The translations under genes were made by a program, and so were the position numbers. A stretch of DNA of 64,000 nt from Trichoplax adhaerens (taxonomy: Eukaryota; Animalia; Placozoa), in contig NW_002060943.1 of the NCBI RefSeq assembly GCF_000150275.1, positions 8,502,066-8,566,065 of the forward strand, given 5' to 3'. Each line of letters opens with the position of its first letter. The first letter of the stretch is position 1. This document shows positions 25,333 to 61,524 of this stretch, piece by piece. Under the pieces are notes generated by a model. The model saw nothing but the letters and a program-made list of their open reading frames with translations. It ran no database searches and was not told where the DNA came from.

Positions 25333-28300
25333 TTATTCCTCTAGAGAAATAAGATTACGACTAGCATCATTATTTTCTTCATTTTCACTTTGCTGAGCCC
25401 ACATTTGTGCATATTTTCCGTTCATTTCAAGAAGATCTTCATGCCTAAGATATATACGCATACGTTGACAATCATGGTTGATCAAACTTAAACTAGCTAC
25501 AGAAAAGATGTTAGCAATAACGTTTCTAAGTTCATCATAGTAAGAATAACAACCGCTAATTATGAACTCACCGTCCTCTCTCTATTATTTCTCCATCCTT
25601 AAGTACAAGGATTAGATCAGCGTTTATGATAGTTGATAGCCTAATTATAGAAAATTAATTAAATAGAGCAAAGCAGGATTAAGTTTCCTTTTATATATCG
25701 AAACGAGTAAATCTATTAAACATTTCACTAACCTGTGTGCGACAACAACTGTGGTACGATTTGCGCATACTTTAGTTAACGAAGTTTGTATGTTTCGTTC
25801 AGTTTGAGTATCGAGGGCAGATGTAGCCTTATTGATTAAAATTAAATTCAGACTTTGGAAACTTCTTGAATCGAACCTACGAGTACAGCTTCGATTGTAA
25901 TTATAGTATTACTAGACATACCTCATCGAGTAACACAAATTGAGGTGACTTTAGAATAGTTCTAGCAATAGCTACTCTTTGCTTTTCTCCTCCACTCAGT
26001 TTTAGCCCTCGTTCACCAACGACTGTATCATATTCTAGTGAAACAGGTAACCATAATTAGGTAATAAAAATTATTTAATTAAGAGAATAACTGTCTTTAC
26101 TACGATACGTACTGTCTGTAAAGCGTAGCACGCGGTCATGAATATCTGCAGCTGCTGCGGCTTCCTCGACTTCATCGTCATTGGCATCAGCACGGCCATA
26201 CCTTACATTATACCTAAATTGATGCAAGAAAAGAAAAATGATTATCTGGCGTATTAGTAACGCTCTTTACTATGATATATTTAATAATCCATTAAGGTTG
26301 TACCTAATACTTTCGTGAAATAAAACAGTATCTTGAGGAACGACACCTATAGCTTTCCTTAGAGATCTTTGAGAAATCTTGATTTGATAGCAATGTAAGT
26401 TAAAATAGGAAATAACATTAAGCATGATAGTACAGTACATATATTCTATACAGAGAATGCTACTCAATATAGAAAAATAAATTCGTACAAAAGCATCTAA
26501 TACAGTAAGTTTATGATTCTAAACTGGTTTTTAATACTACCTCACCTTGGTGATATCCTGACCATCAAATAATATCGTGCCGCTATGGATGTCATAAAAG
26601 CGGAATAGGAGTCTAATTATTGTGCTTTTACCACTACCGGATGGGCCAACCTAAGAAAAAATGAATAATCAGTGTACTATGATCAAGTAGAATTGTGGTA
26701 CCATAAGATAATTTTTCGGTTCTACTGTATGTAGTGACCGATACTCGTATTGCCGATATAACATTTCATCATAATATAATAGGGCTAAGCTATGTCAGTA
26801 ACATAATGAAGAACCCTACCAAAGCTACAGTTTGCCCCGGGAGAACGGAAAATGAGATGTTCTTGAGAACTGGGCGACTGATAAAGCAGAATATCAATGT
26901 TAAATGTTAGAAACTGTATAACTATCGTAGAAAATAGCTTTATCAAAACAACGCTATCATCACCTAGAGTTATAATGAAAACAAACATCCCGAAATTCTA
27001 TTTCGCCCTTAGTTACATTGAGTTCTGGTGCATTATCAATATCTTTCACCTAGCAAAGAAATTGTAACATCAGATTAATGTAATTCATTGTGTAGTACAA
27101 GTTGAAATTTAGATCGGAATGAGCCGCGTACTTTGTAAATAAGTACAGAGAGATGTTAGTACAAAGTACATCGTAATAATAAGATATTTAACGTTTTGCA
27201 AATTCCGTTACATGCTAATAAGTACATACATCTACTTCAGCTTTCATTAGATCAAGCATATTTTCCATGTCAATAAATGATTGCTGTATAGTTCTATAAT
27301 TTCAAAAGTCAACGACAGTATAAAATAATTAAAAGCACTGCTAAATCTGCTTAGAAAAATAATCAGCCTAGTACAGTATTTACGCTACCTGTAGTATGTC
27401 CCAAAGTAATTCAGAGGTGCATAGAGTTGCACTATATAAGTAGCAAATAGCACATAGTCGCCAACCTAGGGATTGGTACGTGACCGTACAGAAAACAAAC
27501 TTTAATTTGAGTATATAATGAGTTAATAGTATCGTAATGAATGTACACGCTCATAGGCGGAGAGGTATACTAAACTTTGGAAGTTAATATTACACGTATT
27601 AGTGTAAAAGTACGTAGAACCATAACCAGTATTACCTTCAAGGATCCTTCCGCTACAAGATTCGCACAAAGTAAAGAACCAGCCAAAAGTCCTGAAGTTA
27701 TAATGATACTTTGTGAAAGGTTTAATAATTGCAATGAGGCTAGGCTAATCCACTCAGATCTCTAATGAAAATAAATTGGCGAAAGCAAAAGATTTACATC
27801 TATTAGTTTTTGGATAGACAGTTTGTAATATCTCGGGTAAAAAATGATATTAATCTTAATTGATTACTATCGTATCACCTGATACTCAACAATCGCAGAA
27901 TTAAATCTGTCAACCTCAAATTCCTCTCCAACGTAATATTTTACCTGAAATAATTTTATTTAGGATGTAAAACTGATTTCATACCATAGCTAAAAAATTA
28001 ATTAAAATTGACCTGCTTACAGTTTCGAAATTTATTAAGGAATCAACAGCTTTAGCTCGTGAAGAGTTATCCAGCTTATTCATTTTTCGGCGAAACTTTG
28101 TTCGCCATTCAGTTATATATATCGTAGCAATCAGATACAATACCATGGCGAAAAATACGATAACGCCAAACCAAGCATTAAAGGCCAGTATGAAGTAAAT
28201 GATAGCTATAATGATGTCAGCTATTGTTGGAAGGATGCTAAAAATGACATTACTATAGATAATATAAATAGTAAAACTTCCATTAATAATCGCACTGATT

Positions 28301-31300
28301 GAAGCGAACATTGATGCTTGATATTTATGCTGTACCTCAGTAGCGTATTAATGCTGCTAGCGCCACGATCCATAACACGTAAGATTTCACCAGTTTTACG
28401 ATTTAAATGCCATTGTAAGGATAAGCTTTTAATGAAAATAATTGTATTCTTAGTTAAACTTAAGTCTTTTCAATCGTTTAATTGACAGTTCAATCTATTT
28501 ACCTATGCAGATGAGCGAATAATTCTACACGCACGGTTCTTGTTGTATATTGCTGAACACGAATCCATAAAAATGAACGAATAATACTTACAAAGCCCAT
28601 TGATCCTGAATGTAACGCCAAATATAATGTTACATCAATTATAAGAATAAATTTCTAGATCAAATTTAATATGTAATCATGTAGGCATTATCTGTAAACC
28701 TACCTACTCCTCCTCCCTGTAAAAACTTGAAACCAACATACGCGAAAATTAACCCGGTTGGCATTAAAATTTTACCATGAACCCCGGTAAGGGCATTTAC
28801 TATAAAAATTCGATTTGAGAAAACCATTAACGTTTCAAGTTACTATGATAGAGAAATCTATACAATAACAAATATTTGTTAAAAACGTTTAACTTACCAA
28901 TATATTTGTAATATAATGGTACCAATAAATTGACTCCTCTCACAGAACACAAGAGGATAAAGCATAATACAACGTGGAATTGAAGTCTCCTAGATGCAAT
29001 GAGAAGAGTATTATCCAGTTATAAAATTTTACTTCACTTACATACCAAACCAATCCATTAATATTGATAGCGTGGCTTTCGTAGCAATATAAAATGCGAA
29101 TGCAAAACTTACTTGTTCTTTTTAGGCCATACATACGGCCATAACATCTTAAATTTAGTGCTGATAGCATTAAACGTCGATTTCGACTCTGATGTTATAT
29201 TCCCGTCCTCTTTATCCTATCAAAACGTAAATGCAATAGTGATTAACATATATGCAACGATACAACATAGAGCAGAATTTACTTCTTGCGGAAGAATGAT
29301 ATGAACAAATAGTAGAAGCTTACAAAACCTACTAAAGGTAATTATAATAATTGTGAATTACAGTAGAATTTATTACAAATGGTGATGATTTCAATCGAAA
29401 CAACCATGATTAGGATCGCAATGAGGAATTCTTAGTCACACGTAACGGTTACTTCGTAATATCACTATTTATCAATCATTTCTTTGATAACTAATTAATC
29501 ACTGCCATACCTCGTCTATCCAATTAAGAAGCCAATATAGCTAATTTATTTTAAGTGTAAGTATGGTCATTCAGTCTGAATATATAAAGGATTCAATAGC
29601 CGTATAGTGGCTAACGAAATTACACTAATCTTGCAGTACCGTCTCTCATAGTATTTACATCGTAACATTAAATGCATTAATTAATAAATGTAAGAACAGT
29701 AAAGTAGAGCTAGTTATGATCGCTTAATTTGCCCGATTCACAATTGCAATAATTATTATAATTATCTTACCTCATCGACATCCGCGTTGACTAATAGTGC
29801 AAAGCGTGCTCCACGACGCATAATACTGAAGGCAGCACCGTGGTAGCCAAGGAGGAGAGATAAAAATGCACCGATATATTTCAAAATGAAGACGCATAAA
29901 TCGGCAATATCGACTAAAAAATGAGAAAAAAATTGCAATTATTACGAGTACTAGCAATCGATTGTCACCGCCATGATATTAGCGCACTACTGTATATTAC
30001 AAATAAATGCAAAGCCCAATACAGATATATTCGCGTATAACTATATTGAGGCGTGATCAAAATCTAGGACATTATAGCGTAGTACTGTATAATAATTATG
30101 AGAGCCGAACTTGTCATACTTACTGCTTCGCTTCATTTGCCACCACCATCGAGGGCTTTTCCACGATATGAATGCTATATTCTCCAAAGCAAAGGCAGTC
30201 AACCAGAATAGAAATAATGGCCATCCATGTCTTGTAGCTTTAGATCGCAAAATGTAAGATCTTTCAATCTTCATAACTAGCATTGAGTAAGTCCATGCCA
30301 AGAAACTTAAGCAAGCAGCTACAATAATATAATCAGGAGGTAGCCTGCCAGTCGTTTCTATTTAATAAATTACCGAAAAATTTTGGTACCGCAGTCACTT
30401 TAAAGTCATATTAGTAAATTAATTATGGGATTATCAATTATGTATCAGCTTGATCATATGATGAGTGGTTGAAGTTGTCATTGTACTTTCTGATCCCATT
30501 ACAGCTTCATCTACAACCGTAAACATTAGCTTTCTTGACTGTCTAGAATCCATCGAATTAATCTATACCTAGCACAGGTCATAATGCAAACTATACTTAA
30601 CTGAGTTGGCTGAACATGCATAATTCGTTATCAATTATTCATGCATGAGTACGATGTCATCTACACTTTATCTAATTTAGTCTTACTACAATAAATTGCA
30701 AGTGTATAAGTGGCACAGTATTGATTGAATTTAACAGCAAAAATCAATGTACCTTCTGTGTGTGTTTGCTTATGGTACTCGTAATGCTGGATGTTACTCA
30801 GATGCTTTTTATCATAGCAAGCATTGCAATTTATTTGTTTCTATACAGTACAGGATTATCTTTTTGGCCCATGATATCTGTCTTTAATTTCGTGCTGTGT
30901 GATATAAATTACTGCTTTAGCTAATCTAACAAAATAGACTAAATTAACTTTCATGCCCATGCATGATATCAGTTCAATTTAATGCTACAATAACTGCACA
31001 GCCATACAATGTACGAGATAATTAATACTTGTGTTTACTCCTCGATGTTTCGTACGATTGTGTATTTAATTTGTACAGTAATTCGTTATGAGATATGCCA
31101 TCAATGCCTGAATTTCTAGCCATTTGAATTCATTAATTATTGTTTTATAGTGTAAATCGCAAGAACTGTTGAAACCGTTTTTCTTCTATACGTGCTGTAT
31201 GACTAGCTATCTCTACAGTCCGATATGAAGTCATCTCTGTGTCGAACTTCAATTGATGAATAAACGGGTGATTCCGCACCTAATGCTATCCATGTTTTGC

Positions 31301-32424
31301 ACGATTTATTGTTACTCAAGAGTAAAAAAAACTATCGACTTGGGATCTTCACATGATAGCTTGCCTAATTGCCTCCTTGTAGTCACAGGTGCAATATCAA
31401 TTTGAATGACGAGTATGGAGCACATTACAGAACTACAGTTACAAGTGTACAAGAGAAGCCTCTTACTGTGTATTTTTAGTGCAGTATCTTATACAAAGAG
31501 TAATTAATATATCAACTGTCAGAAAAATTCATAAGTATCAGTTACTTGGCATAGTTAATCATTGATCTACTACTGTATACTTTAACATTAAAGTATTCAA
31601 TATACTCGCTATGGCGATTTGATGTAGTCAATAAGAAGGATGTATCGATGGAAAGATATCATCCATGCTTAGCATACGTATCATTCTTTGCTATGTATTA
31701 AAAGCTATGTACACAGCCTATCCATCGATTTCTATTTGTCTAGCAGTATATCTAATCCCTTGATAATGTGATCTACTACTGTATAATTTAACATTGAAGT
31801 ATTCAATATACCCGCTATGGCGATACGATGTAGTCAATAAGGATGTATTGATGGAAAGACATCATCCATGCTTAGCATATGTGCCATTCTTTGCTATGTA
31901 CTAAAAGCTATGTACATAACCTATCCATCGATTTCTACTTGTCTAGTAGTATGTCTAATCCCTTGATAATGTGATCTCATCACTTTGCGAAAGAATGTAG
32001 AAGGTTACTACTGTTATGGATGAAAAGCCGGCATTGCATAAAAAGTAGATATTACCCATCATGTTCAATGATGGCGGTCATGGCTACTACTAATTACCCA
32101 TAGCTACAATGGTATGACAGTCGTCAACAATATGACTTGTACCTTACCGATGATAGCATGGATGATGATATAAGCAACGTTGATAAATGCCATGGCCAAA
32201 GCGACTAAATGTTGCAGTTTGTAAGCAAATGACGATGGAATTTTACTGCTCGATTTGCCATGATAGCGCCTTCGTAAGTGAATGCAGTAACCAGTTCCAA
32301 CGATAAAGGAAAGAAAGAGTAATATACAGCCTGCGATTACTCTATAGAAACAAACTGACAAACCAAAATCAACCCATACTGGTGTAAAAGGATCATTGCG
32401 GCTACAAAATATATTGCGTGCCAT
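25333..32424 (-). CDS. ABCB6: ABCB6/HMT-1 family ABC half-transporter (TMD0-TMD-NBD), 22 exons, catalytically canonical
   Basis: TMD0 ([19 protein letters not shown]). TMD motifs [59 protein letters not shown] motifs [33 protein letters not shown] and VAHR are all intact. Confidence 0.97.
31563..31976. repeat. Tandem duplication of ~207 bp in ABCB6 intron 1
   Basis: Two highly similar adjacent copies beginning tgatctactactgtata and ending ctaatcccttgataatg. Confidence 0.9.
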
Positions 32425-32842: not shown

Positions 32843-33200
32843 GCTAATACTAATAATGCTATAATACTATAGCTATTAGCTAGAATATCATACTAATACT
32901 AATACTAATAATACTATGATACTATAGCTATTAACTAGAATATCATACTAATACTAATACTAATAAGACCATAATACTATAGCGTTTAACTATAACATCA
33001 TACTAATACTAATAATACTATGATACTATAGCTATTAACTAGAATATCATACTAATACTAATACTAATAATACTATGATACTATAGCGTTTAACTATAAC
33101 ATCATACTAATACTAATACTAATAATACTATGATACTATAGCTATTAACTAGAGTATCATACTAATACTAATACTAATAATACTATAGCGTAGCATCTAT
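32843..33200. repeat. Minisatellite, ~55 bp unit built from ATACTA hexamers, 6-7 copies
   Basis: Repeated atactaatactaatactaataatactatgatactatagctattaactagaatatc, with a variant ending gcgtttaactataacatc. Confidence 0.92.
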
Positions 33201-33384
33201 AATAATACTATAATAATAATACAATATAAGTTATTAACTATATAAACTACCAATTCATTATAATACTTGTTATTTAGAAATCAAGGGGAATGCTAATGCA
33301 ATTGGGGCTTATTTGAATTCTCATCTTTCGGTATACTGGACTTGAATTGGACATATGGTATATCTTACATTTGCAACATTTTAT

Positions 33385-33905
33385 AGCAATAGTATAAGAT
33401 AGATCGTGTTTGCAAGTCTTTACGTAGTAGTAGAACATTTCCAGTAAAGTATAAACTATTAAAATGCATTCTAAACTGGATATTTGAGGTATAAAAATTG
33501 TAGAAAGGCTCTTAATGTCTCATTCCAATTTTACAACAAGTACAGTATATACTTGTTCGAAAGACTACAGTAATACTTGTAGATAGATCGTGTTTGCAAG
33601 TCTCTACACTGTAGTAAAACATTTCCAATAAATCTACTACCATTAAAATACGTTGTAAACTGGATATTCGTTGCGTAGAAATATATAGTTTTTTTTAATA
33701 TCTCATTACAATTTACAACAAGTACAGTATATACTTTTTTAAGAGACAGCAGCAATAGTATTCGATAGGTCGTGTTTAGAAGTCTCTGTACAGTAGTAGA
33801 AAATTTCCAATAAATTATTCTACAATTAAAATGCATTATAAACTGAATAATCGCGGCGTAGAAATTGTAGAAAGGTTCTTAACGTCTCATTCCAATTTTA
33901 CAACA
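33385..33905. repeat. Diverged tandem repeat, ~183 bp x3
   Basis: Anchor gatagatcgtgtttgcaagtct recurs at ~33398, ~33581 and ~33764; shared ends tctcatt(c/a)caattt(t)acaaca. Confidence 0.85.
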
Positions 33906-34678: not shown

Positions 34679-34942
34679 CCCTAGACTTTAACCCAAACTT
34701 ATGCCAGTGATAGCTACAATAAATTGATTAAAAAGAAAAATCTCTTTCGAAAGAATAAAATGTTGTGATAACTGTTCTACTGCGAATATAATACTATTTT
34801 AACAGCAGATATCTACACTATACTATCAGAATTATTGGATTAGACTGCGAATAAGTGTTGACATACAAGACGTAAACACTTTATCATACTACTATAATTG
34901 GCGTAAAATTTATCTTGTTCAATCCAATTTGACCCGAAGAGA

Positions 34943-37900
34943 CTATCTAACTAGACTTCGGTAGTATAGATTTGTAGCCCTTAAGTATTTGTGTCTGTAA
35001 AAACAAAAGCAAACGCTATTAAGTGATGCTCAGCCAATGGAGAAATATGTAATGTTTACTTAAAATTGAATATACTGTATATAGGAAAGAAATTATATAA
35101 GCAGTTGTTGTAAAATGTGTAATAATATTTCTAGTACATCAAATTTACTTTTACGCAAACATCACCGTAATATTATTACAAATTACAAAAATTATTCTAG
35201 ACCGAAATATCTTTAAAATTCATAGTTGTTACCTTCCTTCGTCTATCGTTTTACCGTCTTTTATAACCACAATATTATCGCATTTCTGAATGAATTCCAA
35301 TCTACAATATCAATAATTTAAGTTTTGAAATGGTTCTGTGATTAAATATTGCTTTAATGGTGTATAGATAAATGCAGAATCTATATTTAGTGCACCTTAT
35401 TAAAAAGTTACTAAAATTTACACTAGTAATAGTCCTAGAAATTTTCTTTTAAATATCAAATATATATGATCAATCCAAATTAGTCATCTAAAGCGGATAT
35501 TGTATTATAAATTTATAACGCAAGCACAATTTTGTACCTATTAGTACTTATGACGACAGTCCTTTCATTGAAGAGCGTACATAAAGGTTGAATTATAGTA
35601 TCCCAAGATTTATCATCGAGATTCAATATTGTCTATTTATATCAAGGATAACATTAGTTGAATGAAAACGATAAGCAGTAAAATTCCTTTCTTCTTAGCT
35701 ATGTAATTTTGCATGACTAATACGAATAGAATTTTAAACATATACTTATTGCTTTCAAGAGGATCATTATTCCATACTATGTATAACTCCCTTATTTCTG
35801 TTTCTGTATAAAATTATACCTCTGAGAGATCTTCGATCAGAACAATTTCCGGATCTTTCAAAATAACTCTAGCAATGGCAATTTTAACTCTATCTTCAAC
35901 TCTAAATCTTAACTCATCTATACCAATTAGGGTGTCATAACCTAATCATCCCCAAATTTATATCATATTACATAAAGTTCCATCAAGATTTAAACCGATT
36001 TACTCATTAGCTATATTCTTAATAGATGTCGGTTACCTTCTGGCAGTGATATTAGTTTTTCATGTATACCGACTAGCTCGCAGGCTCGGATAATTTCTCC
36101 TTCAGATTTATTAGAACACCCATAACTGACGTTGTGTCTAGTCGGATAACATAGGTAATATTATGCATCTGTTGGACGAAATGGTAGTCCTATGCAATAC
36201 TTTACGGTCTAAAAATCATGGATATTGCTATTTAATTCGTACTTTATAGTGCCTTGAATGAGTTTCGGTTCCTTTGGTATATAGCCTATATTCCTTCGCA
36301 AAGACTTCCAGTTTACCTTAATATTTAAAGTAGTGTTGATAGAATTGCTTAAGACTAATTCTATTCTCTCTCCCTATCCTAGATGATTAATATTCCTACA
36401 CATTGTATGCTGTTTATGATTTACTTTAGTTTCTAAAATGATGATTAAGAACTTAGGAAGGATTTACTGTAAACAGGCTTCAAAGTATCCGTGCTGAACT
36501 TATTACTTATGAATCATGCAAAGTTTTGGATCATTTGTAAATCTATGTTAACAAATGCTAGCCTTGTTGAAATGGCAAAATCTAAAGCAAACTTTTATGC
36601 CTGCTTAAAGTTCTGGTAGTAAATAATAGTATCTACACACTAATCACCGACTTCGGACAGGAGACTTACCAATTGGATATTCCTTCCTAGGACCGTAATT
36701 TTTCCTTGGTGTAAAGGGTGCCAGCCATAAATCAACTTTAAAATCGCATCTTTACCACTCGTTGGTGACCCCACCTAAACCAAAACCAATGAAAATTATA
36801 CATAGTGGCTTGTATAACAGAAATAGTAATCATATATTGATCAATATTATCTCCAAATATCGATGGTATAGTTATACTAAACCAACTAATGCTAAAGTCT
36901 GCTGATATAGGACTTGAAGGGAGACATTTTCTATAGCTGGATATCTATTCATGATAATAATTACAACCAGATAAAATTACAATATTGATTAGCATTTAGA
37001 TGTACTAATGGTTAGAAAAATATTATAATAATAAATCTTAAAGGTTAAAAATACAATATATACGTAAATACTTTCGATTAGGTCGAGATGATACATTTTC
37101 CATTTTGATGCCATCTTGATGAGCCTCTAAGTCAGGCAGTTCTTTGTAGTTGTTATCCTTTAAATTTTTTATACAGTATTCATTAGGCAAAAATTCATCA
37201 CTGTATTATAAATTATGTTTTTAAGTTACATGATCAATTATGAATTCTAGAAAAAGATCTTTATAAATTGGCTAATTAATTTAAACATGAATTATCCATT
37301 CATACCACACTATTTTAGTTACCTTCAGGAGATCTTGTAAAATTGTAAACAACCTATTAATATCCTGGATTTGGCCATAACTATAAATTATTGAATAGAA
37401 TATTAAGCCACCCAAAATTATAAGTTGAGTTATAATTACTGGTAAAATATTGCTGTATTCTGGTCATGATGGACTTAGTTAATTGACTATTGCAAGCTAA
37501 AATTGTTAGTTGGTAGTTTGGATTGGTACTACAACTACTACTTTTTAAAATTTTTATAAATTTACGACTATTAAATGATGAATTTGCTGCAAAAACTGAT
37601 AATATTGGCAATAAAACTATAATTTTCGAAACGATTTCTATGATCAATTATAGTTTAAAAAATTCTCTATAAATATTACATCTGTATTTTTTATTCGAAA
37701 GTAAAATCTCATAGCATGCTTCTAGTAATCCCGTATAGAGCAGTTGCAAACCTGGAATTTGAAATTAATGTTCTAACACAGGAATATATGACTTCCAAAT
37801 AGATAATAAACAAGACTAAATCACCAACCTAAGTAAAAATCATAATTATTGGAGAATCAGAGATAGCTCGGTTATTTTAAATTAATCGTTTAATGGATGG

Positions 37901-40900
37901 TATATTGATTTTAATTACCGTCAGTTGTGTCAATAGAATCAGTTTAATTGTCGCTATGCCGCCGCAGAAAAATCCTAATACCGCCAACAAACTTTGTATT
38001 GAATGAGTCCAGAAAGCAGTAAATGTCATCCTCCACGATGAAGCCTATCAAAAGTTTGCGAGGTATGAATCAATTGTTTTAATTATAAATGATTGCATTC
38101 AGGGTTAAAAGCAGCAGTGCATATTTACTTTTCTTTTAGTATAAGGACATAAAATTCATAATTACTGTATGGCATTTCGTATAAAATTTAGATAAGTCAA
38201 GTTTTTTAGATTCTACACTAAATAGAATAGCGTAATGCTGTATACCAAAGAATTATAATTCACAAGTAAGTAATTATGAAACCTCTAAAATACAGACTAT
38301 ATGAATTGCATGAAAGAGATAGTCAGGATTTAGTGTTAAATATAATAAAGTAAAATATACGTATTATTATTCTAGATTTTTATACCTGGTTTTCAGCAAT
38401 TGCATGATGTAAGCGTTTAATCTCAGAATCTTCACTGCAATTTAGTTGCACCTAATGGATTTTATTATTCATCGAGAATTGCCACATTAACGAGTTAGTT
38501 AAAAGCTAAGTTACCAGAGTATAACCAGTATGCTTATTACTAGTCTGTGTTATTTAAAATATATTCTTTGACTTACTGTTTCATAGTTTGTCATTAGATG
38601 AATGGCTATCGATTTCTGTTGATGATTATGTTTAACAGTTTCCTGATATTGTTTGCTATAATAGATATTTCCAACCCTGACAGAAACTATATAAAATGTA
38701 TCATTAGAAGTTGATGGTAGTAAGCTGCTCTTGTAATTTGAGAACGTTTGAGGTTAAATAGGAGACTCTACTCTTTTAAGGATTACATCATGAACAATTA
38801 AAAAAAGAAGAAGTTTCAATAGGTATTGGCTCACCATAATATAGTAAAATAAAATATATTAAAGTACAACCAATCCAGGCATTTATTGTCGTAGAAATAA
38901 ATAAGACCATAAGTATAATATCACAAATCGTCGGAACAATAAAAAAACAAAATTGCCTATAAAAGAGAATGCTTTGATTTAGTATTTATAGTATTCGAAA
39001 TCCAATCTAGTTAAAAATATTGAACTACATCTGATCTGTGCATAATAACATGACGCAGCTGTTATGGTATACTAATTTTAAACGAATTAAATAGATCTAG
39101 CTATGAGTTTAGTGGTGTATAATCACGTACTCCAGTACATCAAATATACTATTAAGCCCATAAATGATATCCGCTGCCTTGCTTGCTAATTCTCGATTGC
39201 TTAAATTAATGAACCAATAATAAGATTGCCTAAATAGTACAACAGTTCATTCAGTTAATTTTTATAGATCCACAAGTCAAGAATAAATCTTTGTGAGCTC
39301 TCTTAATTAGAGTTGCAGCCTGTTAAAATATAGCTAAGTTATATTATGAATAGCAACTTACTGTTGGACACAACTGAATATTTGCACTTGAGTTGACATT
39401 AAAACGGAATGCCTTAACTTAGTCCAGCATAATATTCGTATATTTGTTATTAATCCAACTCTTCCTAAACAGTATTATATCAAAGAATCAAAGTAGAATG
39501 CATATTAAATTTAATTGCTTTTACCGATCTGATTTCATAGTATTACAAGTTATAAACAATTATCAATAGAAATGGTATCTATTGAATGGATGTTATACGA
39601 TTAAGAACAGTAGATATTAAATTTTCATTGGTATATTTGCTAGCAATACTTTAATAATCTGGACCATCTGTTTCTACTTACCATCACTACCGTTAAGAAG
39701 GAATTTACACGTCGCTAAAATAGCCATGTATTTAATTAAAATTTGCGCTTTACTGGAATCTATTACGCTATCCACTAGATCGATAAGATTTTACAAGAAT
39801 AAAGTTAGTGATGATTGCAGATGTAATTGAGTAGATATAATCAATTTATATCATTTTCATTACTTGTTATTAGAATACTTAAAATCGATAAACAACAGAT
39901 CAGTATAAATATATGATCATAAGCTAGCTCTAACTGAAAGAATTACCAATAAGTTTAACATATATCATGGCTAAAAGATTAATTGCTCGCTCCAACAGAA
40001 CCAAAATAATACACATCATGATGTATACATAGCTCCTACAAAGAAGAATATTAGACATGAAGGGGTTAGTGTGATTAGATTTGCAACTCTAGTATTACTA
40101 AAAATAGGAGTTCATCATAGTAGGTTCTGTTCTCATAATAATCTATTGCAAATTAATTATAACGTACGAAAATAGCCTTGGATACCAAAATTTAAGCACA
40201 TTTTGGATACGGTGGTTTAACGATTCTTGCTGTTGATTTGTTTCCAGCTCTTCATGCTAAGAATTAAAGAGGTAAAATGAATATCACATATTTGCTTTAC
40301 AATTAGTCGATCATAAGATATTTTATTCTAACGGCTTAGTCCATGTCCATTGATTCTATCCATTTCATTAATAGTATGCCTTATTAACGAAAATATAGTG
40401 TTGTAATACACCAATTACTCAACTTAGCATGCAGTAAAATTATTGTACGTCATGAATGCCATAATTAGATGATTAAATATAACAAAGTATCATTATAATA
40501 AGGATTTCAAACAACGCAAAGCAGAGGTATCACAAGATTGCTGACGTAATAGTGTATGTTAATTTCATGCTTGTTTCTCATATACAGTAGTAAGATTTAC
40601 TACGCTATCAAAAATTTTTATGATCCGCAATACTAGTCATGCATATTATTCAGTATGAACAGTTATTACCCTTCATGGCTGATAAATAATTATATACTTA
40701 CTGTGCTATACAACTTAGCTGATCTTATTGTGTTCTACAATTAATGGCAGTATTTCTACATCGATACAGTCGAAATTTAAAGTAATTATTATGAAACAAT
40801 ATCGATATATTACCTTATTCAGCTTTGTAATAAAATGGAACAGAACAACGCGTATTATATATCTGAATTTGACTGCTTCTCATCATTGATATATTAGATC

Positions 40901-43900
40901 GGAAAAATAGCTAATCAAATACCGAAATTGAACACTATTATATTACTTACTAATAGAGGATAATTCTGGTCTTGTAAATTAATGGAGTTGTAATCAAAAG
41001 ATTTTCTTTGTCGAAATAATAATATACTATGATATATCAATGGTAGTAAGGCAAGTAGAGTAGCTATGTAGCGGATAGCAAAACAAATAGCCAATGCTAC
41101 TTTGCCTAAAGATAAAAATGGTAATAAAATAAAGTCACTCAGCCTAAAAATTTTAATATTAGAAGATTTATGTTAGGATATTATTTAATACAGCCCATCA
41201 TTATAATCTTCTATGAAAGAAAGTCTACTTTATATCGTATCATGCTAAGTTCCTACCTTCGCTATTGAATTGCCACCACCATTCCGAAATATCATTGAGC
41301 GTAAAGTAGCAAGTATCAACGGTCAGTACGGCTATAACGAAGATGAGGAAAGGTAATACTTGCAAGCAATGATGCATTCTTGGTCGTGCTCTTCGGTAAG
41401 CCTGCCAGATAATTAGCCATCCTAAGCTTGTACATGCCACATTAACTGCAACATAATCAGCTGGCAATTGTCTGTCATCTAGGTTAACGATAACAAAGTA
41501 ATATTTCTAACTGGACGGAAATAAATTTATGCCCATTATCGAGATATGAAACAGATAAAAGCCTTTCTAAATATAACAAAGTTAATTCTCTTCGTCAAAG
41601 TAGTAAGATATCATAATATTTCGGATATAAGAAGTAAATATATCAGTTGTTCAAGTTAACATCCATAATATATAATTAATTGAAATGTAAGACTATCAAA
41701 TTTACCGATAAATTTTATTTTCTTGCTATGTTACTGTACTATCGTTTTTAGCAATAACAACGTCGTAAAAATTATCGTTGTATGAAACATCAGGTAAATC
41801 TTGACACTTTCCGCTACATCATTTTATAGAATCGTTCAATATTGTTCATCTATAAAATGTACACATCCAAAATCCTAGCTATACCGGCTGTATCAGTTAT
41901 GACCTGATTATATATTTCCAGTAAATGGATATCAAAATCAGGGGGATTAAGTTCTAATCATTTGATAATTAATATCTCATATACTAAGTCGCTAAAATTT
42001 ACATGAAACAGTAATCCACTAGTATTGTGCCTTTACGCTGCATTCCAGTTGGCTTAATTGTTATTTATTGAGCAGAGTATCGTAAATGCAGGTAGCATAT
42101 AATAAAGACATATAAACTAGAATATTACCCTCAAGAAGTAGTTTAAATTGTTATTTTTATAATACGGAATCCTCTGCTTATTATAATAATTAGTAATAAG
42201 TACTGTGTCCAAGATAAACTGTAATTTAATAAAGTTGCCAGATGTTATAATTTTGTTATATCTTTACTTAGGTCCTTAGAAAATAGATTGTCTTTTTTCG
42301 AGAAACTTTTTTGTTAAAAAGAAAGGATGATCCTAAACCAAATCTTATAACTTCAAGTTAATAACCTTACTGGCATCCTAAGTAAGTGACTACCGTATTC
42401 TGTCATTCTGTAAGTAAGCATAATTTATTCCTTCAATTGATAGCACTAAAGTATGGATTAACATTTTAGATTGTGAAGGGTATCAATGCAGATAGTTGGG
42501 TGTCCTTATTAGTCTTCGTAGGAATTAAAGATGCAACTTTTGATCAATTTCTATATTCTCAACATCATATTTTACGGCATAACAGATTACTTCAACATTT
42601 CTAGTGTAACTATCATCTTGATTGATCGATTGATAGCTATAGGGACAGATCTTGAGTAACGATATCGGTGACATTTCATCTTACGCTAATTTTTTATACT
42701 CTCTAGAAGGGGATAATCAAATCATTAAATATCTTAAAACTTATATTAATGTCTTATAATTAGGTTAGGAGAGTTACTACCTCCTACAGTAGCTACTTTG
42801 GTCAAGACCACTCTTAACTCATGAGATTAGCAATAATATTCATTATTGCCTTTCTAAAATATGGCCTACATTAAAGAATTAAGTCGCCTGGTAGTATTGT
42901 AAAAATTACTTTTAGCCTGGATTCGTTTTTGGCATGAACGGCTATCCTCTTAAAAGGTAGTTACGAAAGGGTTAAGATTATTATTCTTTCTTTTTGTCAG
43001 CCTGTTGTTGAATTGAATCTACTTGAATATCATGATCACTATGAGACTGTAGCTATTAAACATGCATTTCGTTACTTACGATCATACAATAGTTTTAAAA
43101 ATAAATGTATATTCATAAATGATACAAGCGCTACCTAATACCAAGATTTATAGGGCAACGATAAGGAAAATCCTAAACTTGAACGCAATTCATAATTAAC
43201 CTAATATTTATCATTCATTTTTATGTAAGACACTACCCGCCCTAAAAGGTAATTTATCGGAAGTTCTTTCTGATTGCAAAAACAAGCATCGTTGAGAAAG
43301 ATATAAACTTGATAGCAAGATCATTGTCACGGTAGTCAATTCTGCCACTGCTGAAAATAAATTGACAGCAATCGAATTACTTTCCACCATAGAATAAAAC
43401 AGAGATCGCCACTGTCAAAAGTTACTGTTTAGAGGGGCTTGTCAGTATTTTCATTTCTAAGGATATATATCGACGTGGCGGAAAATTTTGTTTATCATGC
43501 ATGTATCGGCAGATTCGATGCTCTGTTTCTGTTATGAAAGCCATTACTAATAGACTAAGATTATGGTAGTAAGACATTTGATGAAAAAGCAACTGTAATT
43601 GATAAAGTAAATAGTAGTGAATACAATTTCTGCATTGCAAGATTATTAACTGAGAAAGATTGACAGTCAAAAAGAAGGTTCGTACAGCAAGCGGACAATA
43701 CAATATAATAATCCATTCCAAATTGTTCTGCTGTCATGTAAACCTTTAAAATACGGTAGTCAAGTTAATAAGTCATTCGGCGTTATTCTTAGGCCAATGA
43801 CTTTAGTTTGCAACTTACCGGTAAAGATAGACAAAATGGTTGAAACGAACCAAGTTAACAAGATAAGTATACCAATAGCAAGAAAAATTTGGTTACATAA

Positions 43901-44128
43901 TCGGATTGCTTTTATTTGCTGTCTTTGTTGTTGATTCGTTCTATTCGGCCAACAAGCTGAAAAGTAACTTTGAATTAAGACAATCAAGGCAGAAAGTAAT
44001 AATAAACCAGCGGCAGTAAAAGTTTGATAGTAGCACAAAGTTAAAAGTTCTTTTAGTGAAATAGTTAGCGATAATCCATTATATCCAGTACAAAATGGAT
44101 AAGTTTTGTTAAGTTGAGTGGTAGACAT
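34943..44128 (-). CDS. Divergent ABCB6 paralog with a degenerate nucleotide-binding domain (candidate pseudo-ATPase half-transporter), 23 exons
   Basis: Approximate exons: 44128-43819, 41478-41257, 41105-40951, 40256-40168, 40035-39948, 39774-39682, 39464-39362, 39229-39131, 38955-38835, 38686-38577, 38451-38386, 38044-37919, 37828-37752, 37380-37323, 37157-37072, 36944-36887, 36774-36670, 36316-36243, 36137-36037, 35941-35820, 35628-35539, 35301-35233, 34994-34943. They splice through GT-AG introns into one open frame collinear with ABCB6 (LPADY, EWWWQ, VPTICD, NAWIG, NYETV, VGDLVLF, GYDTLIG, IAIARVILKDP). Confidence 0.85.
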
Positions 44129-48954: not shown

Positions 48955-51900
48955 ATGTGGAATATTAAAGTACTTCTATTTATCTCCCTTTGGGCATATT
49001 TAGAGGCAAAAGGTAAGTGATTTGACTGAAGAAAAATGTCTTTTTATCACATGGACAGTCAACTATTTCTTCATCTTTGTGAATAAATCACCAACCGGTG
49101 CTAAAGACTCCAAAGCTGTACTCTACAGTACGATCACTAAAAGTTAACATTTTTTCAGACTATCCATCATCACAGTAGGAAATAGATGGGATTTGAAATG
49201 AGTGATTTTTATGACTAGTCAATTCTGTAAGAATTAAAAAAATGCGGTAGATTTGGCTCGCGCACCAAAGAAAATCACTACACCGTCATGACCGTACGTA
49301 CAGTACAAGGCACTCAGTGACAGAGTAAAGTACTGTACTTGACTAGTCGTAACCAAGTTATTGTTTTCTACAGTATAGTATGGTTCCGCATCTTGATGTT
49401 CCTTTTTGTCACACCTCTATTCTTGGAGAATGGAATGGGCCAAGCAAGCCAGCTAGGATGAATCTGATCCGATGAATCTTCCATAAATACACGACATTAT
49501 TGTCATACTGACTTGACCATCTTGACAATTTTCTCATAGCGAAGATTTATCAAATTATCCATCTCGTGACAAAATGATACTGAAGCGTATAAAGAAAGTA
49601 ATTAGAATAAAAGTAAATAAACTGGGAATTTTTTCATTATTTAGTTATCCCGTCAATAAAATATAATCATTTGGATAATGTATCATTCGTTTAGTTAATC
49701 CTGTCATTTTACTTTACATTCTTCTTTTTGGGTACAGTCGCTTCAAGTTTACGTTCTTATTCTGCTCTCCTCGTCATTTTAACCAAAGTCAAGGGTTGTA
49801 GTGCACATTCCTTCTTTCAATGGAATAAGCCTTTAAGCTTTTACCGGCGCATTATTATTTTTCTCTTTCTATTGATTGACGGTGTCAATCGAGGCTATTG
49901 TACATTGTAAAATACTATAAGATCGTTTCTAAGTACTTATTCGTACTTTTCACAATGGATTATAATTGTCGATATTGGAGCGTTTTCCATTGGAAAGCAA
50001 AAAATTCGCCATGCATTTCATGTGAGAAAATGTTGGCCGGCCCACTTTCGTATTTTTACATACAGTACGCTTCTAATTATAATTTCAGCGCCTTCCACTC
50101 TATGCTAATAATTATACAGTATATTATATATAATTATTGTCATTCTTGTGTACTGTATTAGCCAATTTGCCCCCTTAACAATAGGATTGTAGGGAGTACT
50201 GGTAGTAATAGTAATTGCACGTGATTGAAAATTATCACCACACGTACAGTACTATACCGTCCTTATTTATATACGGCAGGCACTGAGCCGTTATTGAGTT
50301 TCGCGGTATCAATTATATCGGATTAATTGATTTCTTTTTCTCTTTGTTGACTACTAGTCATGGATGGACTGGTAGGGCTGACTAAAATAATAATTATTAT
50401 TATTATTAGTTTGAATTTGTCCGAATGTGTGTAGCTACATTTATTAAGAGCTTCAAATTCAGTCATCTGGGCTACAGGATTAAAAAGAAAATTTTCGATT
50501 GTTTTCTAACAACCGTTATGCAGTTAGACAATTACAATTAGTCAGTATATCGGCATATTACAGATGCCAACGAATAATCAGGGTTTTATCAACAAAGATA
50601 ACGATGATTAATAACAAATGATGTGTACACTACTAAAAGAATGTCACCAGAGTAAATAAGTATTTTATCTACTGTAGTACTATCGACAAACTTCAGAAAA
50701 TACTCTAAATAGTGTTATGTAGAATTTGCATCTGTTAAACCGTAGTTCTGGAATTATCGGAATTTCATACCTTCAATAAGGATGGATGAAAGCGGTAGTC
50801 AATCAAGCGATTGGATATCTTGGTTTAGACACTTATTATGCAAACTATAGCATACAAGTTATCTAATTTCCTGAACTATCCATTGTGTAGTTTATAGGAA
50901 GACATATGCTTCCGTACCACACTTTACGATCTAAATATAAATCATCGTCATGATGTCATTGATTGTTTTCTTTCTTTTATCCCTTAATTAATATAGCGAT
51001 ACAAAACAATGTCGGACAAGATTTCGTTGTGACTTACCTGGAAAGCGATCATAAAGTGGATAGCGTAGGTATGACCGTTATTGCGGTTAAAACTACTGAA
51101 ATAATTATCCTAACTGACGACGACGAAGCTTATAAATTTGAACTGGAAGCTGGGGCATCGAAAACATTAACATTATCTCGTAATCGTCGCCAAAGTGGTG
51201 CGACAATAAGCTCTAATGTGGTTCAAGTTAGTGCGACTGAGGATATTATAGTTTATGGTATGAATTGCGTCTTGTCACCTTCAGATGGATTTCTTGCTTT
51301 ACCAACGACTTCACTCGGAAAGGAGTATGTCATTGCCAGCTTTAAACCAACTTCTGCATCACAATTCTCTATTACAGCTGTAGAAGATAATACTCTGATC
51401 AATATTAGCTTAGTGCAGTCTCCTGATAAGAATTCTCAAAGATATCAACAAATACAACTTAATCGGCTTCAAACATATCATTTCAAGGACGAACACACTG
51501 ATTTAACGGGAAGTATTGTAAATTCTGATAAGCCTGTTGCAGTAATAAGTGGCAATAAATGTGCTCGATTGACGCTAAATCAGGAGCACTGCAATTTTAT
51601 TGTTGAACAACTATTGCCAGTTAAAGCATGGGGTAATCACTTCATTAATGTTCCTGTTCCGGGCGAAGAACATAGTCAGGAGAATATCTTTCGTCTTATT
51701 AGCGCTTTTGATGGGACCAATGCCAATATTACTATCGCAGATACAACCAAGAAGGTAACAATTAATAGAGGGCATTATCACGAATTACATGTTCCATCCG
51801 ACGCAGATTTTCATATAACGACGTCAAAGCCTTGCTCAGTTATGCTATACATTAAGGGAATACCGGGAAAGAATGGGTTTTCAAGGCCTGTCCTGATGTC

Positions 51901-54246
51901 TGTAATTCCTACAGAACAATTTTCAAGTGGACAATTGTTAAGTACCATCGGCGTTTTTGATAAAAGTGTAACGAATTATATGGCTATAATAACAACAAAT
52001 AATGCCACAAGTTTAAAAATGGATATGCTGCCCTTGTCAAAGGGATTGAAGTGGAGTAAAATTAATAATCGGTATTATTCAACTTTATTCAAGATCCCTC
52101 AAGGTGCACATTTACTTCATCAAACTCTTCCTACAGAAAAGCTAACGACCTATATATTCGGAATTGGCCAGGGAACATCAGTTGCTTATCCAGCAGCTAC
52201 AAATGTTATGGCAGTATCGAGAAACTGTGTTCCAACTGTGACCCACGCAGCAGGAAATGATATCGACGACGATTGTGATGGTATTATCGATGAGGAATTA
52301 CAAAACAACATCGATGATGATGGTGATGGCCTTATTGACGAAGATTTATATGCCACGTCTCCGGATCTTCAATTGGACAGCGCTCTACATTTGCAGTCTT
52401 GTGATATTCATTCGACAACCAAGGATACTTACGACAGTAAAACTTTTAATTATTCAATCAATTCCAAGTGTGTTCTGTATGGCAGTTCAGCTTTTTCTTT
52501 AAAGAAAGTTGACAGTAATAAACTCACTTCACGTTGCGGGAATAGCCTTATAAGAGAATGGATTTTAACTGATGCCTGTGGTATGACAGTACGAAAAAGT
52601 CAGCAAGTCCAAGTTTTACTCCCTATTAGTAACAAAATTACTCTACCGCAAAATTTTATTGCGAAATGTTCTAGTGATGTGTCTCCAACAGTAACTGGCA
52701 AGCCTTCTGTTAATACATCTGTCTCGTGTAAGGACGTTAAAATTCCGGATCCATCTATAAATTATATCGATAGAGTAGAGAGATCTTCGTGCGATGAAGT
52801 TATTTACCGTAAATGGAATATCAACTATGAAATGTTTTGTGGGGAAAATATAAGCCATACTCAAGAAATCCGCTTAGGTTTGTTATTTGAGCATTCCGTA
52901 ATTCTCAATTAACCTGTAGAAAATATGTTGTCTATTAGTTTACTGTAATTTACCAATTTTTCCGTAATACAAGAATATCTAGTCAGATTAGACTTTACTA
53001 AATCAAAGATGATTGACTTTTTTTTACTCAAGTTGGCTATAGAGCACCTATTCTACCGCAAATTAGAGATCTTAACGTCAGTAAGAATGCGATAGGCGTA
53101 TTTTGGTCGGTCAAACCAGATGAGACAAATTGTGTGACGGAACTGTTATGCCAGTATAAACCTGCAGATAGTGATGAAGCTAAATCTCGTCAAGTTGATA
53201 AATCAGTGAATCCCATTTACCTTACTAAGTTATTACCTAATACCACCTATATTATTAGTATGTATACCATTACCAAATGTGGTCGAAGCCACACTCCTGT
53301 AGAAGAAGTTATTACTACACTTGTTGATGGTAAGAAAGTACTGTTTGTTTCCTATCGCGTGAACAGAAATAAAGCTACACCGGTATGTCATGTTATTATT
53401 ATTTATCCTTAAGGTGAAAAATATACTACGGTGACTACACCATACACTGAAAGCAGCACAGCATCAGATCCGGCAACCACTCCAGCAACAAGTTAGTTCC
53501 AGTTATTTTAAATTAAATTTGATAATGTAGATTTCTTATTATAACCTTACGGAATATTTAATGTACATTAATAACATTTCAGCTATGACATCCACCGATA
53601 AAAAGCCGGGTGAATTGACTGGTAAAACCACCGTTCCTAATCCTACAAGTAAAAGCACCACTGTTGACCCTACAAGTAAAAGCACCGCTGTTAACCCTAC
53701 AAGTAAAAGCACCACTGCTGACCCCGCAAGTAAAAGCACCACTGCTGACCCCGCAAGTAAAAGCACCGCTGTTGACCCTACAAGTAAAAGCACCACTGCT
53801 GACCCCGCAAGTAAAAGCACCACTGTTGACCCTACAAGCAAAAGCACGGCTCCCAACTACACAGCTAAGAGTACAACATATCCAACTGCCAATCCACAAA
53901 TAAATGGCCCAGTTAGCACTGGAGTTATCACCGTTATTGCTTTAGTAGTTGCTATTTCGCTAGTTACTGTTGGAGGTGTGGCGTATAGGTAAGTAAAAAC
54001 AAACATTTATGTGCATCGTACATACGTATCAATGTATCATTTTTTGAGTAATGCTATCTTTGAAAGGTATATTAATTTTGCTAACATAATTCTGATAATA
54101 GATATTATAAACGAGGACATCAATCCGTTAATGTTGCTAGCAAGAAATCTGTACCGCCTTCACAACCTTCATCGAAAGTACCCGTCGACATCGTTTATGC
54201 TCCAGAAGTCAAAAAAGGAGCAGTCCCAAAAGGGACTTCTATTTAA
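48955..54246 (+). CDS. Type I membrane glycoprotein: signal peptide, IgGFc-binding N-terminal domain, Asp-rich DDDCDG motifs, Cys-containing Ig/HYR-like repeats, FN3, Ser/Thr stalk, TM, cytoplasmic tail
   Basis: Exon 1 (48955-49012) MWNIKVLLFISLWAYLEAK is signal-like and joins the 1.88 kb exon 50997-52877 in phase 1. That exon has FCGBP-type motifs SDGFLALPTTSLGKEY, DLTGSIVNSDKPVAVISGNKC and EQLLPVKAWG. FN3 exon 53033-53329 (W..LLPNTTY). TM VITVIALVVAISLVTVGGVAY is followed by RYYKR. Stop TAA at 54244-54246. Confidence 0.85.
53642..53857 (+). repeat. Coding 27-bp tandem repeat x8, P(T/A)SKST(T/A)(V/A)D mucin-like stalk
   Basis: cctacaagtaaaagcaccactgttgac units, in frame within the IgGFc-domain gene. 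Confidence 0.95.
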
Positions 54247-60100: not shown

Positions 60101-61524
60101 TTTTTGTAAAGCACAAAGATTAATTACGATGCCACTGTTGTATCATTAGGTGGATTAATGTTCTCGATCCCGAAGTCAATCGCAAGAGATGGACGATAGA
60201 CGAAGAGAGGAAACTTTCATCACTAATTCAACACATTGGTGAAGGTAAGAGGAGGCGAATTTTAATGTTTAACTGATTAATGCTAGCGAACTAATCTATG
60301 CAAGTATTATAAACGGAAATTTTGATGCTATGCATTAGGAAAATGGTCACAAATCTCTAAAGAAATGAGTCTTCGAACAGATAATCAATGTCGTAGGAAA
60401 TGGATATCTATTCAAGTAATTTAGAGATAATTTTTTACTTTTTCTTCTTTACCTATTGTATCAATAGTTTTACTTATGTAAGAGTTCTGACCTTGGACAG
60501 CCTATTAGATAATGATCTATATTCAATTTTTAATATTTATTCAAATAGAATTCCTCTAAAAGGAAAGCACGATATCAAAGTTTACGGAGGTTTCCAATAA
60601 GTGGCAATATCTCAGAAAATAGCGGCTTTGATCAATTGTTCACAGAGGCAGGGAAAGATACAGTAGCATCAAATAGTACGCACCTGGTAGAAATATCAGA
60701 AAATCTCGCCGAGAAGCAGCCCCTAGCAAAGAGATCATCTAATATAGGTAACATACGAAAACGATAACGTTGCCCAATAACAACCGTAACCGTTTGATAG
60801 GTTACTCTTATAATATTCTCTGACACTGTAGATACTGAAGATTTACAGGCGATACAAGGTAGTCCTGCAAAGAAGCAGAGTCGATCAGACGAATCGTTAG
60901 GTACGCATACTGATAATTAAAATGGGGGACAAACCTGCATTAATTAAGATTGATAAAGATTGCGCGATATCCAAGGATAGTTGTTTCCCTATTTCTGAAG
61001 ATAAACTCAAATTATGGATACTAAAGCAAGAAAGATTGATCTTTTGCTACAGTGTAATATCAAATTTAATTATGGTTTCTATTTCAGATGAAGCGAGGGG
61101 ACATGAAAATATGATTACTAAAGAATCAGAGATAACGGCAGATCACAATTATGCTGCTACAACAGAAACAACCAAAAAATCGGCTGAAATAGATAATAGC
61201 AATTCTTCAGACGCAATCCTACCTACGGTAAAGACTAAGCCACAAGGTATACCAAAAGAAGCTATTTGGGATCTTTCTCGTCTACAACGCAGTATTGATA
61301 AGAAGCTGCTAAAATTAACTGATAAATACAGTGGATATTTAAGTAATAAAGGAATCAATTTTCCCCCTCAAGATAAAGACTTATATGAGAAAAAACTACA
61401 AAAAATTAAGAGCGTAGCCTATCAGGAACGCGCTCAGATTGAGAAACGATATCTGTTACCTACTGGCTATTTATCCGTTAACTTTAATGTAATATCAGTA
61501 AACATACCAAACCAAAATTCGTAA
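57162..61524 (+). CDS. SNAPC4: snRNA-activating protein complex subunit 4 (SNAP190), multi-Myb-repeat protein
   Basis: N-terminal YQDAIE..LEENR and PYFVDDSGK|TPPKNEDA resemble SNAPC4. A partial repeat INWRRIS..CELQWFNVDHPNI is followed by four Myb repeats starting WSATED, WTEDED, FTKEED and WTIDEE (ending RTDNQCRRKW). The 3' end assumes no further splicing. Confidence 0.85.

Follow-up and report, generated by a model that had tools for sequence, protein, structure and literature searches.

What role can be left to an ATP-binding cassette (ABC) half-transporter in which every ATPase motif has degenerated, and is such a gene still maintained by selection? The question is raised by a tandem pair of genes in a 64,000-nucleotide stretch of the Trichoplax adhaerens genome (contig NW_002060943.1, positions 8,502,066 to 8,566,065 of the forward strand), which is referred to as the window. 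Here, a degenerate ABCB6-type copy (gene A, 44128-34943) and its canonical ABCB6 neighbor (gene B) are arranged head to tail, both on the minus strand, with gene B downstream of gene A. We favor, with somewhat better than even confidence, the interpretation that gene A encodes a selectively maintained pseudo-ATPase paralog of ABCB6, which serves as a non-catalytic subunit of a dimer, most likely with the product of gene B.

Gene model and transcription of gene A

The window is AT-rich (29-39% GC) and its genes contain many introns. Stop-free segments contain pieces of a degenerate nucleotide-binding domain (NBD) in the region of gene A and canonical ones in gene B. Those of gene A could be assembled into a model of 23 exons and 826 codons without a stop, which begins with an ATG at 44128 and whose stop codon ends at 34943. 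All 22 introns are of the GT-AG type and show no splice defect. The model reproduces, at the same coordinates, the span and the single stop-free frame that had been proposed from the sequence alone (hereafter, the original prediction).

Parts of the locus occur in 18 public runs from six studies; many of the runs contain 17-28% of its words, approximately its exonic share. Contigs of four runs were aligned to 34700-40699 only; gene B and the two 5' junctions of gene A lie outside that range. Intron-skipping contigs, with CT..AC ends that correspond to GT..AG on the minus strand, were found in three runs of three studies (X4, X6 and X9), of which X9 is a declared RNA-Seq library. The original prediction had called for a search for spliced transcripts, and these contigs supply them. 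Joints between contig blocks were fixed on GT/AG, and three loose contig ends were placed separately. The RNA-derived contigs give exons 4-23, including all of the degenerate NBD exons, and support 20 of the 22 junctions; exons 4-23 join as one open frame that runs to the stop at 34943. For exons 1-3 we relied on the sole consensus GTAAGT donor after the first ATG, on TAG acceptors and on the splice sites of two orthologous fragments (see below). No further coding exon is expected, because the lengths of two long contigs allow just 43-90 nt 5' of the ATG.

At the other end of the gene, the last-exon contig runs about 535 nt below 34700, which gives a 3' untranslated region (UTR) of at least about 780 nt that ends at most about 1.7 kb from the start codon of gene B. 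The runs show two synonymous variants and one non-synonymous variant in exons, too few to be informative. An exon-by-exon comparison with gene B revealed no alternative canonical NBD exons in the introns of gene A. No match was obtained in an Rfam scan of 24-45 kb, and a tRNA scan also found none. A 170-nt unspliced contig across intron 16/17 (36745-36914), which carries a G>T change at 36871, is present in X4 and X6, and an X9 contig (36464-36772) extends from exon 17 into intron 17/18.

Degeneration of the ATPase motifs

The ABC mechanism requires the Lys-Ser/Thr of Walker A, the Gln of the Q-loop, the signature motif of the partner, the Asp-Glu of Walker B and the His of the H-loop. Where gene B has the Walker A sequence GPSGSGKST, gene A has GSPTSGKDA, in which the fourth Gly is replaced by Thr and the Ser/Thr after the Lys by Asp, and which no longer matches the pattern GxxGxGK[ST]. 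The Q-loop reads VVPQD in gene B and YIPKE in gene A (Gln to Lys), and the signature LSGGEKQR is replaced by FRVEDRVK, with none of the LSGGE core residues left. In Walker B (FVLLDE in gene B, IVLIED in gene A), the acidic pair is swapped, with Asp at the position of the catalytic Glu. The D-loop changes from TSALD to TILNLD, and the H-loop from VAHR to STNR (His to Asn). All six of these changes had been listed in the original prediction, and each lies in an exon supported by RNA. Two further elements are affected, namely the X-loop (GERG, changed to GIDE in gene A) and the A-loop, whose aromatic residue is displaced from its canonical place.

Changes also extend to the transport path. In transmembrane helix 6 (TM6), human ABCB6 has PLNW and gene B has PLNY, and the corresponding residues of gene A are CVRT, with loss of the equivalent of W546, the residue that caps the substrate cavity of human ABCB6 (PMC10514269, PMC11143254).

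When exon 20 of gene A is aligned to solved ABCB NBDs, FRVED falls over LSGGQ of ABCB19 and LIED over LLDE; the same exon matches the ABCB19 and ABCB1 NBDs with an E-value of 1.6e-5, scoring above ABCB6. With the Pfam profile ABC_tran, only exon 17 is detected among the exons of gene A (E 0.038). The hydrophobic core strings of the NBD are retained, and the structural strings that had been reported as conserved (GYDTLIG, IAIARVILKDP and DNIVVIKDGK) are indeed found in gene A. Still present are also the Walker A Lys, within a GxxxxGK P-loop pattern, two acidic residues after the Walker B strand and the D-loop Asp.

These last residues are what an unorthodox NBD might use if it still binds nucleotide and perhaps hydrolyzes it slowly, in which case the gene A product would be a slow pump or a switch gated by ATP. 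In TAP1, CFTR and SUR, the degenerate sites do bind ATP (PMC5790381 for SUR1). Nevertheless, we regard this explanation as improbable, since every element is hit at once: Asp stands in place of the Mg-binding Ser/Thr, Lys in the Q-loop, Asp at the Glu position and Asn in the H-loop, the signature is gone and the A-loop aromatic is displaced. The near silence of ABC_tran, which detects one exon at a marginal E-value, points the same way, and the known asymmetric ABC proteins retain one consensus site, whereas a homodimer of gene A would have none.

Relationship of gene A to gene B

The exons of gene B match MTABC_N (1e-26), ABC_membrane and ABC_tran in Pfam, and their best relative in PDB is by far human ABCB6 (1.6e-9, 2e-29 and 9e-9). 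A scan of the whole genome located its sole MTABC_N matches in gene B. Judged by its domains and closest structures, gene B is a canonical ABCB6 ortholog. Its predicted model is stop-free, with 22 exons and 828 amino acids.

A blastp comparison of the two proteins gives an E-value of 2.6e-85 and an alignment that is colinear across 808 amino acids, which excludes chance similarity. Overall identity is 26%, with 22% in TMD0, 25% in the transmembrane domain (TMD) and 32% in the NBD. The two genes have 21 introns in common by position and phase, and gene A has one extra intron between exons 9 and 10. The proposal that the introns of gene A lie at ABCB6-equivalent positions and phases is thus borne out for 21 of its 22 introns, with reference to a predicted model of gene B, but not for the extra one. 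The 26% identity, the shared introns and the colinear alignment together indicate that gene A is an old and fast-evolving ABCB6 duplicate, rather than a recent copy. The original prediction of a tandem ABCB6 paralog is therefore right in that an ABCB6 ortholog adjoins gene A, but would mislead if tandem were taken to mean recent.

Colinear homology over TMD and NBD places gene A among the half-transporters of ABC subfamily B. The shared introns and the tandem position with an ABCB6 ortholog favor its assignment to the ABCB6/HMT-1 lineage. Exon 2 of gene A aligns to exon 2 of gene B, including the PxDY and WWW motifs, and the hydropathy profile of gene A displays four clear N-terminal peaks. 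In PDB, exon 9 of gene A matches human ABCB6 chains only, although weakly (E 0.06). Exons 2 and 13, when searched singly against PDB, returned only noise, and exons 1-3 of gene A itself gave no MTABC_N match in Pfam.

The 2.5-kb spacer between the two genes holds tandem arrays, one at 32844-33226 (about 6 copies of a 55-bp unit, also read as 110 or 159 bp) and one at 33385-33905 (2.8 copies of a 184-bp unit). A 203-bp unit is repeated twice with a 91% match in the large first intron of gene B (31563-31977), and the translated copies are similar stop-free segments.

Orthologs, selection and the pseudogene alternative

By searching with exon 2 of gene A, we obtained a 585-bp metagenome contig (L001, from the marine-type metagenome ERZ23499241) and two Logan contigs of up to 1705 bp (L003 and L004, from runs SRR30664515 and SRR30664517). 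All three have about 31% GC and introns of about 130-430 nt, and they contain exons 2-3 or exons 2-6 of an A-type gene, arranged as in gene A, with equal exon lengths (222, 155, 89 and 93 nt) and matching splice sites. These fragments are 40-66% identical to gene A but at most 31% identical to gene B, and L001 and L003 are 79% identical to each other at the DNA level. Because exon 2 of gene A has only one match in its own genome, the fragments come from other organisms, and the two source organisms are probably other placozoans. Exon 2 of L001 and L003 matches MTABC_N at 2.2e-5, and exon 2 of the T. adhaerens gene is more diverged from this profile than are its two orthologs.

Other searches with exon 2 yielded little. 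A phmmer search of a 1.84-billion library with an 88-aa segment of exon 2 recovered a 99-aa metagenome fragment and one spurious match, and no full-length protein; a scan of Joint Genome Institute (JGI) metagenomes with the exon-2 alignment gave 248 pattern matches, none of which was confirmed; and a profile of the three exon-2 orthologs had no match in PDB.

Ratios of non-synonymous to synonymous substitution (dN/dS) were computed by the Nei-Gojobori method for exons 2, 3 and 6, i.e., in the N-terminal third of the gene. The ratio is 0.17 between L001 and L003 (dS 0.62), and between gene A and L003, where dS is saturated, it is 0.19 for exons 2 and 3 and 0.25 for exon 6. The orthologs of gene A are under purifying selection in this N-terminal third. 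For the NBD, we simulated random substitution with AT bias in a domain of 250 codons, counting neither indels nor splice sites; the domain stayed stop-free in 4% of runs when amino acid identity had fallen to 80%, and at 60% it did so in none of the 2000 runs. Since the NBD of gene A is only 32% identical to that of gene B, neutral drift of an open NBD is unlikely. The argument that heavy divergence without disruption reflects selection is therefore upheld by the dN/dS of exons 2, 3 and 6 and by the simulation; the cross-species comparison is confined to these three exons.

These results bear on whether gene A might be an unprocessed pseudogene that is still transcribed, or a gene whose inactivation in T. 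adhaerens is so recent that no mutation has yet struck its frame. Such an explanation would account for the loss of all catalytic motifs, for the greater distance of the T. adhaerens exon 2 from MTABC_N, for the absence of NBD exons from the orthologous fragments retrieved and for the occurrence of some unspliced contigs. But 826 codons and 22 GT-AG introns contain no stop, frameshift or lost splice site, correct splicing is seen in three studies, and dN/dS in exons 2, 3 and 6 is not near 1. The ratio near 1 or disrupted orthologs that would mark a pseudogene are not what we observe, as exons 2-6 are intact in two other organisms, with dN/dS between 0.17 and 0.25. Moreover, retention of the hydrophobic core strings of the NBD alongside altered catalytic residues is what a pseudoenzyme shows and not what decay produces. 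Pseudogene status is unlikely, and of the explanations considered here it is the one to which we give the least weight.

Proposed role and an ATP-independent alternative

The interpretation of gene A as a maintained non-catalytic subunit can be put in mechanistic terms. Gene A would go back to an ancient duplication of ABCB6, the canonical copy of which still lies 2.5 kb downstream, and its product would have the architecture of an ABCB6/HMT-1-type half-transporter, with TMD0, a six-helix TMD and an NBD. The NBD keeps its fold-forming core, but the Walker A, Q-loop, X-loop, signature, Walker B and H-loop no longer have their catalytic residues, and the cavity has lost its aromatic cap. Because of this loss of catalytic residues, the protein should be unable to power an ATP transport cycle by itself. 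A homodimer would have no competent ATP site, and a heterodimer with the product of gene B would be impaired at both sites: one composite site would be dead through the Walker A, Walker B, Q-loop and H-loop of gene A, and the other would be without a signature motif. Instead of pumping, the gene A protein may damp, gate or retarget ABCB6, and we infer that it does so as a non-catalytic subunit through dimerization.

Adjacent ABC half-transporter paralogs are often obligate heterodimers, as in TAP1/TAP2 and ABCG5/ABCG8. The N-terminal extension of HMT-1 is required for protein-protein interaction (PMC2944878, PMC6077975). For these two reasons we favor the gene B product as the likeliest partner of the gene A product. 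In human ABCB6, TMD0 directs endolysosomal targeting (PMC4410673).

Alternatively, the gene A product may act alone, as a homodimer or via its TMD0, and without ATP. It would then be a passive carrier, exchanger or channel, or an endolysosomal scaffold or receptor, with the dead NBD serving as a structural or regulatory module for dimerization. The evidence for a maintained and expressed gene applies equally to this explanation; the remodeling of the transport path in TM6 and the loss of its cap would fit it, and the TMD is only 25% identical to that of gene B, which argues against a conserved A/B interface. SbmA/BacA demonstrates that a TMD of the ABC-exporter type can function without ATP. 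On the other hand, a full-length NBD of about 250 residues was kept open over great divergence, which suggests a role beyond what a scaffold would need, and we know of no ATP-independent member of the ABCB subfamily. Overall, the ATP-independent homodimer is nearly as good an account of the data as a subunit of ABCB6, and we keep it as a tentative alternative of rather low probability.

Several considerations weigh against a non-catalytic partner of ABCB6. At 26% identity, the dimer interface between the two proteins may no longer fit, and a homodimer of the gene A product is equally allowed by the data. Nucleotide binding could persist through the retained Lys, acidic residues and D-loop Asp. 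With respect to the gene models, the exon 1/2 and 2/3 junctions of gene A are predicted and not read from RNA, and the model of gene B, which was built by imposing the intron phases of gene A, is a prediction only, with an uncertain exon 3/4 region. The contigs speak for transcription and splicing of gene A and not for its level of expression, and beside the spliced contigs there are unspliced pieces from intron 16/17 (X4, X6) and from part of intron 17/18 (X9), which could be due to intron retention, pre-mRNA or DNA carry-over. Finally, the motif losses could be recent in Trichoplax. No orthologous NBD exons were returned by a word-index search with the signature/Walker B exon or the Walker A exon, and these blanks are uninformative; the search sees only lengths of 0.55-1.75 times the query, and short exons are rarely called as genes.

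On balance, we still prefer a selectively maintained pseudo-ATPase subunit. A broader statement, for which we see the chances as evenly divided, is that placozoans keep under purifying selection an exporter subunit whose whole NBD is a pseudoenzyme. It would make this subunit the first natural example of a type IV ABC transporter that works without a competent ATP site. Such a subunit might restrain or target ABCB6 from within the complex, or it might serve the endolysosomal system as a carrier or channel independent of ATP.

Features of the window

The coordinates of genes A and B are collected in Table 1. Elsewhere in the window, a single open frame of 649 amino acids (50963-52912, plus strand), which is unusually long and intron-free for this window, contains an IgGFc_binding domain (Pfam 1.6e-55) and, after it, stretches that are acidic and DxDxDG-like or rich in Cys. 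An exon at 5531-5992 (minus strand) codes for a class I S-adenosylmethionine (SAM) methyltransferase fold (Methyltransf_25/31/11, E 3e-9 to 1e-7), and a 200-aa open frame at 60922-61524 (plus strand) has no Pfam match.

Table 1. Positions of gene A, its exons and motifs, and gene B in the window
Feature	Position	Strand	Evidence and remarks
Gene A, degenerate ABCB6-type half-transporter, coding span	34943..44128	minus	23 exons, 826 aa
Gene A exon 1, start codon at 44128, start of TMD0	43819..44128	minus	predicted: first ATG after upstream stop, GTAAGT donor
Gene A exon 2, TMD0, PADY and WWW motifs	41257..41478	minus	predicted bounds; same 222 nt and matching splice sites in L001/L003
Gene A exon 3	40951..41105	minus	donor: loose contig end 40256/40951; acceptor by homology to L001/L003
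Gene A exon 4	40168..40256	minus	RNA-derived contigs
Gene A exon 5	39947..40035	minus	RNA-derived contigs
Gene A exon 6	39682..39774	minus	RNA-derived contigs
Gene A exon 7	39362..39464	minus	RNA-derived contigs
Gene A exon 8	39131..39229	minus	RNA-derived contigs
Gene A exon 9, transmembrane helix; PDB matches are human ABCB6 only	38835..38956	minus	RNA-derived contigs
Gene A exon 10, preceding intron absent from gene B	38577..38686	minus	RNA-derived contigs
Gene A exon 11	38386..38451	minus	RNA-derived contigs
Gene A exon 12	37919..38044	minus	RNA-derived contigs
Gene A exon 13, TM6; CVRT replaces PLNW/PLNY	37752..37828	minus	RNA-derived contigs
Gene A exon 14	37323..37380	minus	RNA-derived contigs
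Gene A exon 15, A-loop region; aromatic off canonical place	37072..37157	minus	RNA-derived contigs
Gene A exon 16	36887..36944	minus	RNA-derived contigs
Gene A exon 17, degenerate Walker A at 36745-36771	36670..36774	minus	RNA-derived contigs
Gene A exon 18, Q-loop Gln to Lys at 36269-36283	36243..36316	minus	RNA-derived contigs
Gene A exon 19	36037..36137	minus	RNA-derived contigs
Gene A exon 20, X-loop 35910-35933, lost signature 35883-35906, Walker B with ED for DE 35829-35846	35820..35941	minus	RNA-derived contigs
Gene A exon 21, D-loop 35615-35632, H-loop His to Asn near 35540-35554	35538..35632	minus	RNA-derived contigs
Gene A exon 22	35233..35301	minus	RNA-derived contigs
Gene A exon 23, coding part to stop codon	34943..34994	minus	RNA-derived contigs
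Gene A 3' UTR, aligned part	34700..34942	minus	last-exon contig, run X4
Gene B, canonical ABCB6 ortholog (by sequence)	25333..32424	minus	predicted 22 exons, 828 aa; all ATPase motifs intact

Significance and comparison with known systems

ABC exporters are defined by ATP-driven alternation. If our interpretation is correct, gene A would be a natural experiment on what the exporter fold with a silent NBD can do without hydrolysis, and it would show how a duplicated pump turns into a regulator. The locus is compact and testable; in this early-branching animal, the dead copy adjoins the live gene from which it derives. Simple read-outs exist for ABCB6/HMT-1, namely ATPase assays and the tolerance of hmt-1 mutants of S. 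pombe or C. elegans to cadmium. We know of no description of a type IV ABC exporter in which the whole NBD is a pseudoenzyme, and the known odd ABC exporters (TAP, CFTR, SUR and ABCG5/G8) all keep one consensus site. In the literature, of which our coverage was incomplete, we found no paper on a Trichoplax ABCB6 paralog or on a fully degenerate ABC half-transporter.

Among known systems, gene A appears to have its architecture (TMD0, six-helix TMD and one NBD) in common with ABCB6/HMT-1, as represented by human ABCB6 and by HMT-1 of C. elegans and S. pombe. Both ABCB6 and HMT-1 work as homodimers that use ATP to pump porphyrins and cadmium-thiol complexes (PMC6785578, PMC11143254). Gene A differs from them in that every ATPase motif is degenerate and the capping aromatic residue (W546 in human ABCB6, Tyr in gene B) is lost, and its identity to gene B amounts to only 22-32%, depending on the domain.

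The use of a non-catalytic site for regulation is an established theme in asymmetric ABC exporters. TAP1/TAP2, ABCG5/ABCG8 and bacterial pairs of the TM287/288 type resemble genes A and B in being encoded by adjoining paralogous half-transporter genes, one of which has non-consensus NBD motifs. In pairs of the TAP1/TAP2 type, however, the changes are complementary and exactly one consensus composite site is left, whereas gene A is degenerate in both the Walker/H-loop and the signature halves and gene B is canonical, so that an A/B dimer would lack a complete site. SUR1/2 and CFTR are similar to gene A in that the ABC exporter fold is put to a use other than pumping, there with one degenerate site (PMC5790381). 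They nevertheless need ATP binding and hydrolysis at their consensus site, while gene A is a subfamily B half-transporter with no consensus element. A further parallel is with pseudokinases, pseudo-GTPases and pseudo-ATPases, in which, as in gene A, the residues of the fold are kept, the catalytic ones are replaced and the gene is under purifying selection.

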